A stretch of DNA of 63,787 nucleotides, filler included, from Perkinsus chesapeaki ATCC PRA-425 (taxonomy: Eukaryota; Protista; Perkinsozoa), in the NCBI GenBank assembly GCA_013115145.1. It is 9 parts of 9 records of this genome, joined end to end, with 100 filler letters (N's around TTAATTAATTAA, not from the genome) between each part and the next. Parts side by side here need not be neighbours in the genome. Positions count along the whole stretch, not along the records: positions 53,073 to 55,638 come from JAAPAO010001574.1; 8 more parts are not named here. One strand, 5' to 3'. How positions within the stretch are numbered: position 1 is the stretch's first letter; each line of letters starts with the position of its first letter. The notes under the pieces were generated by a model. It saw nothing but the letters and a program-made list of their open reading frames with translations. It did no database searches and had not been told where the DNA came from. This document shows, piece after piece, positions 52,850-55,808 of this stretch. A program made the translations under genes and the position numbers.

Positions 52850-53085
52850 GATGACGCAAACTTGAATCTCGGGCACTACACATACTCTACTATTACGATT
52901 CAATAGCCGTTCCGTTGATTCTCGAAACCTTATGAATCACTATCGAATCAGTCGGTTGGGTGTAGGGGTGAGNNNNNNNNNNNNNNNNNNNNNNNNNNNN
53001 NNNNNNNNNNNNNNNNTTAATTAATTAANNNNNNNNNNNNNNNNNNNNNNNNNNNNNNNNNNNNNNNNNNNNGCTTCTGTCCCTC

Positions 53086-53982
53086 TTATCTTGTGCAACG
53101 GGGCGTCCCGGCCGAGTAAACCAGCCCAACGAGTTGACCACACTTAACGTTTTTGTGTTGTCCGGCTAGGGCAAGCAACTGACGTTCGGTTCGTATTCTC
53201 TTGCTTACGATCCAAGAAGAGATGTCGCTCAGACGTCTTATGCGGGCACGATCGCCTACTGAGTGGTCGGCATCAGCGGCCTTGCTATCAGTCTGGGTAG
53301 GGTGCGAAGGAATCGCTGGGTGACGCGAGCTGAGGAAGGGATTGGCGTCCGTCTTGCAGGTATAGGTGTAACATCCTAGGTAGCTTGTGAATGAGCGAAA
53401 GTTGACGTTGAAGCCACGATCACGTAGTAAATTTGCGAGCCGCGGCCAACGATGGCGTCTACTAGAGCAGGTAGACACATGAAAGTGTACCCCACGGTCT
53501 TCATCGTGTTCTTCGGAGCACACACAGTAAAACTCTAATGGGACGCCCGCGTGCGAGAAGACCTGCTCGATATGCTCGCCGAAGTCTGCCTTGGTAACAT
53601 TAAGACCAGGGATCCTTGCAGTGTGACTGGACACGCGTGGGTTTGCCCAGGTGATCAAATAGTACCGACTATAATCTGGGGAACGTCGAGGAGGTGCTGC
53701 TGGAGCTGCACAGGGGGAATGACTCTGATCAGGCGGGACCTAAAATTCAAATTACTATGGGAAAAAATACGCTCGAATGAGGCGGAACGCGAAGTTCATG
53801 AGAGATCTCACCTTTTCCTCGGCTTCCGGGAGGCTGACTGCCGAATATATGGTAGGGATGCAGTCATCACTCACGATGAAGTCAGAAAGCGTGTTTGAAC
53901 CAGCTTGCGAATCAATGTTTACCTCTATGCGCACCGGAGAATCCAGTTGAGAATAGAAGGGCTCGATATCCAGGAATTCCAT
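53086..53982 (-). CDS. HUH-superfamily rolling-circle Rep endonuclease (CRESS/Replitron-like), 2 exons (53812-53982 and 53086-53739)
   Basis: Motif I YYLITWANP, motif II EEHDEDRGVHFHV, motif III YTYTCK. A 72-nt GTGAG...TTTTAG intron (53740-53811) joins a 57-codon ATG exon in frame. No helicase motifs before the stop. Confidence 0.85.
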
Positions 53983-53995
53983 GTGAAAACGGTGA

Positions 53996-54088
53996 GCTGA
54001 TCAACTGATCAACTGATCAAGCAAAAATAAATAAATATATTATATATATTCTTTAGATATCGATTGATCAGCTGATCAGTTGATCAGC
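53996..54088. other. Stem-loop with 25-bp arms (1 mismatch) of iterated CTGATCA(A/G) 8-mers and a 43-nt AT-rich loop
   Basis: Left arm GCTGATCAACTGATCAACTGATCAA (53996-54020). Right arm TTGATCAGCTGATCAGTTGATCAGC (54064-54088). Confidence 0.95.
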
Positions 54089-54394
54089 ATCGAAAAAGAT
54101 CCAGCAAGACAGCAAGAAACCGTTTCTTCACCAGAAGTCGCACAAGAGCAAGATTTTCGCTTTGATAGGCAGAGACAGAATTATTTTATATGTGGTTTTT
54201 CATCGTTTAACTACCCTCTTTGACTTGTCACGCCTCGAAGAAGACCACAAGAGCAAGCAATCATGAATCCCATCAACACCATCTCATTGAAGAACTCAAT
54301 GCGGTCGCAGGGCTACGCAGTGTTGGAATGTAATGCGCCTACTATCTCCTCTCAACTGAGTGCTTGAAGAGCTACAGCCGGCAAGTTGAGCCAC

Positions 54395-55537
54395 TTAGTG
54401 CTTGATGAGAGCCCCTCGGTTCGTAAGAACTGCTCTTACTCGCTTAACCATACTGTTAATTAAAGTGTTAGCATCAATAGTGGTGTATACTGCCTGTATT
54501 CGCTTCACAAAGTCTTCTTCTGTCTCGCACGCGCCTTCTGAGGACGCCATTGATCGGAGGCGTGTCTTGAGTATGGCAAAAGAGTTCTCTATACAAGCCA
54601 AATCTGGCGAACGGGGAGGAAAGTCCATGAACTTAATGCCTTCCGCTGTGAGAAGTCGTGTAAACGATAAAGCCCTTGGTGCTATATAGTTATCCCCCAT
54701 TATTGTTTTGCGATTGGCATGATTTCGTCTATATCGTTTTTTCAACAGGGGCACAGCTGTGCTCCGATAAAACGACTTATAAGAGTCTGCTGAGTTATCT
54801 GGTATAGCAGTAATAACGGGCGCTTCTCCCCAGGCTAGTACTCCCACCAGCTTCACCTTCTTACTCAGTCGAAACGCAGATCTCGAGTTTCGGGTGCGAT
54901 CTTCATGCCCCCAGGCACGGTCTCTCACTGCTGCACGACTGCCACTTTTGTCAAACCCTATAGTGACGCCGTCCATGTACAAACCAACTTTATGACGAAA
55001 GAACGCCGCTAGGCGTCTATCATCGTCTCCGCAAATTTTTTTGATGCGGGACGCCCACAGGAATCTCTTGCGCCTGTCACCTCTACGCTGTAGTATTCGC
55101 GCTGGTACCCGACGACACTTCCACCCTCCTTCACGGATGATCCGTAGCAGCGTGTCGTACGAAAATGGTATCCGTCTTGACGTATAGAAAGATTTGACTG
55201 TTAGAAAAGGGTGTTTCGCTCTGGCGGCTGAGAACTCTCTCAGGATAATGCGACGGCTGCGGCTATCAGCTACGTGAGGGCGGCCGACCTTAACAGCAGT
55301 AGCATGAGGGGACTTGCTAGTGTTCTTATCATTCGCATGCCGCTTGAGTGTCCTCACCACAGTAGACTGGGAGCAACCAACCGCGGCAGCAATCTGGCGT
55401 GTCGAGGATCCGTCTTTCCATCTTTTGCATATGTCTTCTTTGCTAGTTGCTGTTATATAATACGCCGAGTGGCCCTTTGAGCATCCCCGACCTGAGACAG
55501 GAACTTCGGATTGAGCGAGTTTTTCCGAGCAAGTCTC
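54395..55537 (-). mobile_element. Tc1/IS630-family transposase, DD34E; start codon and TIRs not identified
   Basis: The frame stays open upstream of the tracked ORF and includes an HTH (GSSTRQIAAAVGCSQSTVVRTL). Triad: LYMDG, MGDNY and FPPRSPDLACIEN, with 34 residues between the second D and E. Confidence 0.88.
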
Positions 55538-55808
55538 CTACTGCAGTCAATCGCAAAATTATGAATCAGCAACGCGCGTCCCCCACACCCCTCTCCAATG
55601 TTGTATACTAACACGTTCTACCTTCATGCAGTATACCGNNNNNNNNNNNNNNNNNNNNNNNNNNNNNNNNNNNNNNNNNNNNTTAATTAATTAANNNNNN
55701 NNNNNNNNNNNNNNNNNNNNNNNNNNNNNNNNNNNNNNAACAAACCATTGTCCTTTCCGAAGGGGTATAAAACAACTTCAGGCGCTCGCGGGCTGTTAGG
55801 CGAACGCC

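Follow-up and report, generated by a model that had tools for sequence, protein, structure and literature searches.

The DNA analyzed here (hereafter, the window) is a stretch of 63,787 nucleotides, and its positions 53073-55638 are one entire 2,566-bp contig of Perkinsus chesapeaki (JAAPAO010001574.1). This contig carries two genes of a putative mobile element, one for an HUH-type replication initiator (Rep) and one for a Tc1/IS630-like DD34E transposase, together with a palindrome of TGATCA-containing repeats next to the Rep gene and part of a longer, "terminal" palindrome at the contig edge (table 1). All features of interest on the contig lie on the minus strand. An earlier note on this DNA had described the Rep gene; neither the transposase nor the palindromes had been noticed there, and both change the picture. 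Seven loci were compared: the window; L001 and L118, which come from one Logan run; and L002, L003, L004, and L119, which come from P. olseni assemblies.

Table 1. Features of the P. chesapeaki contig, in window positions (HTH, helix-turn-helix).
Feature	Position	Strand	Description
Rep exon 1	53812-53982	-	57 codons from ATG; acidic; predicted to be disordered in the relative P0152
Rep intron	53740-53811	-	72 nt; GT..AG; spliceosomal-type; in-frame stop within
Rep exon 2	53086-53739	-	HUH endonuclease domain and helical linker/oligomerization region; stop 53086-53088
Motif I, YLITW	53647-53661	-	in Rep exon 2
Motif II, HFH, with EEH before it	53479-53487 (HFH)	-	in Rep exon 2
Motif III, YTCK	53353-53364	-	in Rep exon 2
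TGATCA palindrome upstream of Rep	53996-54088	.	arms 53996-54020 and 54064-54088; perfect 25 bp; 43-nt AT-rich spacer
Tc1/IS630-like DD34E transposase	54395-55537	-	380 codons plus stop; HTH region; D..D..34..E
Long "terminal" palindrome	55544-55638	-	transposase-side arm 55544-55606 and part of the center; cut by contig edge

The earlier note had described three HUH motifs in order and a 72-nt intron joining an upstream ATG exon in frame, and both observations were confirmed. The motifs lie in order in the minus-strand exon 53086-53739, and the exon junction in the NCBI model of this contig (P0001) corresponds to the same 72-nt intron. Furthermore, introns were observed at the equivalent place in relatives: that of L004 (model P0152) measures 55 nt and that of L003 (model P0004) 75 nt, and in the degraded copy L001 this place is occupied by a GT..AG interval of 69 nt. 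An alignment of exon 1 showed residues conserved in three lineages (M, DIE, and FI..D); the exon 1 of L001, which contains stops, was left out of this alignment. That the intron is common to diverged copies fits long residence in the nuclear genome. The gene was searched one exon at a time; a joined form entered the analysis only through the database record P0001, which appeared as a hit and formed one row of alignment A1. In a word-index search, the gene matched an NCBI protein at 100% identity ("hypothetical protein FOL47_002175, partial"). Within window 53086-53200, the deposited model P0001 ends earlier than the open reading frame (ORF), at a predicted splice donor, and is flagged as partial; the predictor used by the annotators also expected coding sequence past the contig.

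Rep exon 2 alone gave no match in Pfam, NCBIfam, or PDB sequence searches, Rfam gave none on the contig, and the word-index search returned only two relatives of the Rep and one of the transposase. The Rep was recognized only via an exhaustive search of representatives, family profiles, and a fold search. In particular, exhaustive phmmer searching detected 173 cluster representatives at E <= 1e-3, and in alignments of 78 and 41 relatives the exon 2 residues E76, H78, H85, H87, Y120, Y126, and K129 were invariant or at least 90% conserved. A Pfam scan of 38 longer relatives gave REP_ORF2-G2P in 19, Gemini_AL1 in 5, Parvo_NS1 in 7, and PPV_E1_C in 7. The AlphaFold model of exon 2 (predicted local distance difference test [pLDDT] score of 82.9) consists of a beta-alpha-beta-beta-alpha-beta core followed by four helices. 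Its best fold matches in the PDB were the Rep endonuclease domains of Vientovirus FB, wheat dwarf virus, tomato yellow leaf curl virus (TYLCV), and circoviruses (E 3.6e-5 to 1e-3; probability 1.0; target-normalized TM-score 0.62-0.70), and Rep68 of adeno-associated virus (AAV) first appeared at rank 34, behind geminivirus, circovirus, and redondovirus Reps. There were 462 matches in BFVD at E <= 1e-3, and the named entries among the 50 listed were all Cressdnaviricota-type Reps. Because of the 173 representatives, the conserved motif residues, and a model that matches solved Rep domains, the motifs cannot be attributed to chance. Motif conservation and the predicted fold together confirm the claim of the earlier note and place exon 2 as a real HUH Rep endonuclease of the type found in circular Rep-encoding single-stranded (CRESS) DNA viruses. 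The members of the wider Rep family (P0005-P0151) are almost all without names and lie on metagenomic contigs of 1.7-5.5 kb, one of which is labeled as part of a Poribacteria metagenome-assembled genome.

The Rep had further been described as an endonuclease with no visible helicase, which is true of the contig but represents an edge effect. The contig edge (53073) lies 13 nt past the Rep stop, and every longer relative (P0002, P0003, P0152, P0011, and P0012) runs on into an SF3 helicase; the Walker A loop and further sequence were observed in P0002, P0003, P0011, and P0012. Thus, the window probably lacks the helicase because the contig ends before that point, and the helicase-free, Replitron-like reading of the earlier note was not borne out. 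Exon 2 aligns to residues 16-196 of the 442-residue second exon of P0152 (498 aa, from an intact P. olseni copy), so that the window Rep is cut at ~44% of the length of its intact relative. The last ~19 codons before the stop showed no alignment with relatives, and this divergent end (~70 nt) may reflect one frame change, an unrecognized intron, or an error at the contig end.

The family profile matched SF3 helicases, namely AAV Rep40/68 (E 9e-7) and parvoviral NS1. The full-length model of P0152 (pLDDT 81.3, with residues 1-73 disordered at pLDDT ~33) aligned with AAV Rep68 over the full length (508 columns, E 9e-12), and its C-terminal half matched the papillomavirus E1 helicase with a target-normalized TM-score of 0.68-0.72. 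The helicase of the relatives therefore belongs with the SF3 enzymes (AAV Rep40/68, NS1, E1, and large T antigen) and not with the Pif1-like SF1B helicase of Helitrons. This half of the Rep family is nearer to parvoviral and papillomaviral SF3 helicases than to the solved CRESS ones, a resemblance that hints at a chimeric Rep lineage.

The transposase matched the NCBIfam IS630 family (E 4.3e-17; protein residues 39-351 on profile positions 7-295 of 299) and Pfam DDE_3 (E 2.7e-5). Its second D and its E align with those of Sleeping Beauty SB100X, with 34 residues between them, and the comparison with an intact P. olseni copy revealed no stops or frame changes over reference residues 9-375. In the intact P. 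olseni unit, an ORF of 475 codons (L004:8205-9632) runs from upstream of the long palindrome, through the palindrome, and into the transposase, and the reading frame through the G-rich palindrome arm is also open in L003. This ORF may contain the true start of the transposase, and the palindrome may be partly coding; in the window, the frame is not open.

The TGATCA palindrome lies 13 nt from the Rep ATG, and each of its arms consists of three TGATCA-containing 8-mers. As DNA, it folds with an energy of -26.8 kcal/mol (z = -9.1), and none of 200 shuffles was as good. Its arms, but not its spacer, were kept at the same place in L001, L003, and L004, and the palindrome is also found in L119 and L118. 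We regard it as a candidate Rep-binding or origin-like site, or as a promoter element. Scanning metagenome_contigs for the 22-nt TGATCA-repeat arm gave 113 loci, none of which encodes a relative of the Rep or the transposase; thus, the arm motif is too simple to be specific. As for the long palindrome, alignment A4 places the window arm alongside the two arms of the corresponding palindromes (186-200 bp) in L004, L001, and L003. The invariant parts of these arms are CAACATTG, a run of G, and a terminal CTG (window 55544-55546), and the long palindrome of L004 folds with z = -7.1.

Wherever the DNA of the seven loci reaches, the order of features is the same (long palindrome, transposase, TGATCA palindrome, and Rep), in one orientation throughout. 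The loci represent four lineages: the window; L001; L003; and L004 with L002 and L119. Amino-acid identity between the lineages is 42-52% for the transposase and 39-52% for the Rep, and these equal identities indicated that the two genes diverged together. The Rep was never observed without the transposase among the loci examined, in which L003 contributes two Rep copies and L004 three units. A complete 3.5-kb unit contains only the transposase and the Rep as ORFs of at least 150 aa; it holds no capsid gene candidate and no third ORF of at least 150 aa. All copies seen are chromosomal, and the element is present in two Perkinsus species and in several P. olseni isolates. Close-relative scans of viral_contigs and metagenome_contigs detected no close relatives of P0152. 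In the earlier note, an SF3 helicase together with a capsid gene was taken as the mark of an ordinary endogenous CRESS virus; the helicase was found, in the relatives, but a capsid gene was absent from the complete units. Because these complete relatives have no capsid gene, we concluded that the element is not an ordinary endogenous virus of this kind. In L118, ~1.3 kb of unrelated sequence (L118:1-1298) precedes a 5'-truncated transposase, and this locus may be a truncated or interrupted copy.

Two of the loci carry the element as head-to-tail arrays. The L004 array, which runs to the contig end, comprises 2.3 units of 3,481 bp (97-98% identity), and its start coincides exactly with the CAG edge of the long palindrome. 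In L003, the repeated unit measures 3,821 bp (99% identity), and the array stops precisely at the CTG edge of the palindrome, where it adjoins an array of 150-bp tRNA-Ser units. The arrays thus appear to begin and end with a whole palindrome, with neighboring units sharing one. Since the array ends are whole palindromes, the outermost arms are mutually inverted, as observed for a single boundary on the left and a single one on the right. Each unit is bordered by palindromes ending in CAG...CTG rather than by short direct terminal repeats. The earlier view of a mobile system is supported insofar as the Rep belongs to a repeated, probably mobile system.

We addressed the condition of the two genes by comparing copies of the L004 lineage that are 97-99% identical. 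The ratio of nonsynonymous to synonymous substitution (dN/dS) was 0.11-0.22 for the Rep, with 11-17 synonymous versus 4-10 nonsynonymous changes per comparison, and 0.06-0.43 for the transposase. As estimated from these ratios, both genes are under purifying selection among young copies. No break was observed in the present part of either gene in the window, and both genes are intact in units 1 and 2 of L004, the partial unit 3 having one frame change in the transposase. In L001, the transposase has two stops and the Rep one frame change and one stop. The first Rep copy of L003 has one frame change, and the full unit of this locus has three frame changes in the transposase and one frame change plus four stops in the Rep. 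The 5'-truncated transposase of L118 has two stops. The family thus holds both intact and decayed copies. The NCBI model P0004 (L003:4468-5834) skips the HUH motif region and other stretches, and it apparently bridges the breaks of a degraded copy with predicted introns; the public "proteins" of the Rep family are therefore partly gene-calling artifacts.

Taken together, we consider it probable (roughly 70%) that the contig holds an incomplete copy of a composite mobile element, without a capsid gene and ~3.5-3.8 kb long, that resides in Perkinsus nuclear genomes and needs both enzymes. The window copy has no helicase part and only one palindrome arm through the contig end. A complete unit would comprise a palindrome of 186-200 bp with the outer ends 5'-CAG...CTG-3', the DD34E transposase, the TGATCA palindrome, and the one-intron Rep gene, and the full Rep would consist of a disordered acidic N-terminus, the CRESS-type HUH endonuclease, a helical oligomerization region, and the SF3 helicase. 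We infer both the mobility of the element and its mechanism, which might run as follows. The transposase would cut and join at the palindrome ends, and the Rep would bind the TGATCA repeats beside its own gene and nick nearby. With its helicase, the Rep would then drive replication of the copy, either by a rolling-circle mode or, if the long palindromes act as hairpins, by a rolling-hairpin mode, and the resulting multimers would be inserted as head-to-tail arrays. Given the inward-facing arms and the parvovirus-like helicase, the replication mode may be of the hairpin type. We also tentatively propose a stronger version, which we hold to be possible rather than probable, of a self-replicating transposon in which a DDE transposase acting on palindromic ends is obligatorily coupled to an HUH/SF3 Rep that replicates from the origin-like palindrome. 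If this version is true, the head-to-tail arrays would be inserted replication multimers, and the element would be a living halfway form, with DNA transposons on one side and small viruses or plasmids that encode a Rep on the other.

Several points weigh against a composite mobile element. The element is known from its sequence, and the roles of its enzymes are suggested by the families to which they belong. The tail of the window Rep departs from its relatives just before the contig edge, and the open frame of the window transposase (54395-55537) showed no recognizable start codon. One left and one right array boundary were seen, each on a contig without the other flank; neither a target-site duplication nor an empty site was found among the copies, none of which has both flanks, and no TA dinucleotide occurs at the left boundary of L004 or the right boundary of L003. 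In addition, the palindrome arms face inward, like those of a miniature element and unlike those of a simple transposon with terminal inverted repeats (TIRs). The spacer of the TGATCA palindrome contains no block conserved in all four lineages, and consequently no nick site can be named. Finally, the tandem arrays could have arisen from unequal crossing-over, and dN/dS values below 1 would also fit genes retained by the host.

Other explanations account for parts of these data. One of them modifies the composite element by giving it another replication mode, that of an integrated, parvovirus-like replicon with hairpin ends: the palindromes would be terminal hairpins resolved by the Rep, the arrays integrated concatemers, and the transposase an added integration module. 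Such a replicon would explain why a palindrome lies at both array ends and once between units, why the long palindrome folds well, and why AAV Rep40/68 and NS1 of parvovirus B19 (B19V) are, by sequence and overall architecture, the nearest counterparts of the helicase of the relatives. However, the endonuclease matches the geminivirus, circovirus, and redondovirus Reps far better than Rep68 with its rank of 34, there is neither a capsid (VP) gene nor any further large ORF, and CAG...CTG ends beside a Tc1-like transposase fit transposase ends at least as well; we therefore consider this variant unlikely. It is decidedly unlikely that an ordinary endogenous CRESS-like virus came by chance to neighbor an unrelated Tc1-like transposon and left its Rep as a decaying fossil. 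An identical neighborhood is kept in four lineages with proteins only about 39-52% identical, the complete units are without a capsid gene, the Rep has a dN/dS of 0.11-0.22 and a conserved intron, and no close relative was detected among viral contigs. These observations stand against the facts that the fold and family of the Rep are those of CRESS viruses, that the metagenomic contigs with distant relatives (1.7-5.5 kb) are as long as small Rep replicons, and that some copies are degraded.

Retention by the host would make the Rep, the transposase, or both domesticated genes and the arrays ordinary tandem gene duplications, and the conserved intron, the dN/dS below 1, and the occurrence in two Perkinsus species and several P. 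olseni isolates are compatible with it. Nevertheless, several deeply diverged paralogous lineages exist within one species, degraded copies are frequent, and the contigs are collapsed and short, which is typical of repeats; moreover, the unit is bounded by conserved noncoding palindromes, and one array interrupts a tRNA-Ser gene. Thus, we judged retention by the host to be very unlikely, and the domesticated Rep suggested in the earlier note was not supported by a gene that is multicopy, arranged in tandem arrays, found in degraded copies, and constantly linked to the transposase. It is highly improbable that the element is an HUH transposon like the Replitrons, without a helicase and with the Rep as its sole means of movement. 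The contig does show a Rep endonuclease that ends in a stop without a helicase, and the TSAR supergroup, to which alveolates belong, contains Replitrons (PMC10288648), but only 13 nt separate this stop from the contig edge, the SF3 helicase is present in all longer relatives, the ends are palindromes instead of short direct terminal repeats, and a DDE transposase is always linked.

Compared with known systems, the composite element of Perkinsus would have its nearest precedent in the "geminivirus-like transposon" of the truffle Tuber melanosporum, in which a Rep-like ORF and transposase ORFs lie inside TIRs (Liu et al. 2011, PMC3198968). Both elements are repeated, combine a CRESS/geminivirus-type Rep with a transposase, and have no capsid and no obvious target-site duplication (PMC3198968). 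However, the Tuber element is a reconstructed copy with interrupted ORFs, whereas the Perkinsus element has intact copies and signs of purifying selection on both genes, and the two are likened by description only. The Perkinsus element further differs in its 186-200-bp palindromic ends, the TGATCA palindrome before the Rep, the head-to-tail arrays, and the alveolate host. With the Reps encoded by CRESS DNA viruses and by related plasmids (Cressdnaviricota; Gemini_AL1, REP_ORF2-G2P), the Perkinsus Rep shares motifs I-III, the single catalytic Tyr, the endonuclease fold, the helical region after the endonuclease, and, in the relatives, the fused SF3 helicase. In contrast to them, it is chromosomal, intron-bearing, capsid-less, and linked to a transposase, it falls alone below Pfam and PDB sequence thresholds, and the helicase of its relatives is nearer to parvoviral Rep/NS1 and papillomavirus E1 than to the solved CRESS helicases. 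The likeness to parvoviruses is limited to this helicase and to the overall Rep68-like architecture of the relatives.

The other half of the element resembles the Tc1/mariner/IS630 (ITm) group in its DDE transposase with an N-terminal HTH, the 34-residue spacing between D and E, and the full-length match to the IS630 profile. It differs from that group in having a second, equally conserved enzyme gene, whole-palindrome ends, and head-to-tail units, and in the absence of a TA duplication at the two visible boundaries. Replitrons and Helitrons are likewise eukaryotic mobile elements with a Rep-class HUH endonuclease. However, Replitrons have no helicase and have short direct terminal repeats (Craig 2023, PMC10288648), and in Helitrons the Rep is fused to a Pif1-type SF1B helicase, whereas the Perkinsus relatives have an SF3 helicase plus a DDE transposase. 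Teratorn also couples a DDE transposon to a viral replication system as one mobile unit; it is 180 kb in size and joins piggyBac to a herpesvirus (double-stranded DNA), in contrast to the 3.5-3.8 kb and single Rep gene of the Perkinsus element (PMC10175614). No published description of the Perkinsus element was found in the literature on Perkinsus Rep and single-stranded DNA (ssDNA), on Tc1 and CRESS, or on Perkinsus genomes.

Modules are believed to pass between viruses, plasmids, and transposons that encode a Rep. To our knowledge, few elements have been caught with a viral-type replication initiator and a cut-and-paste transposase together. In Perkinsus, the pair has kept its linkage, its order, and its noncoding palindromes while the proteins diverged to <50% identity. 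Because this linkage was kept and both genes appear to be under purifying selection, we argue that the combination itself is a functional unit. This would bear on how ssDNA replicons gain integration modules and, perhaps, on how transposons acquire replication. The element also accounts for a set of "hypothetical proteins" and of short, collapsed contigs in assemblies of Perkinsus, and a "helicase-free Rep" call made at a contig edge needs to be checked against relatives.

Further observations concern the noncoding parts of the element and its surroundings. The 306 nt that separate the transposase stop from the TGATCA palindrome contain an exact 12-nt direct repeat (window 54141-54152 and 54246-54257, 105 nt apart), which may be due to chance. 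Beside the element in L003, a tandem array of ~5 kb (L003:6394-11452) consists of 150-bp units with a tRNA-Ser gene in each, the anticodons being tga, aga, and cga. The element array ends inside the first of these units, where the last bases of the element replace the first six of the tRNA. Dada transposons target tRNA genes in Perkinsus (PMC3706591), and a Dada transposon was considered since the array abuts a tRNA-Ser gene; it was ruled out by the transposase found here, which is IS630/Tc1-like.
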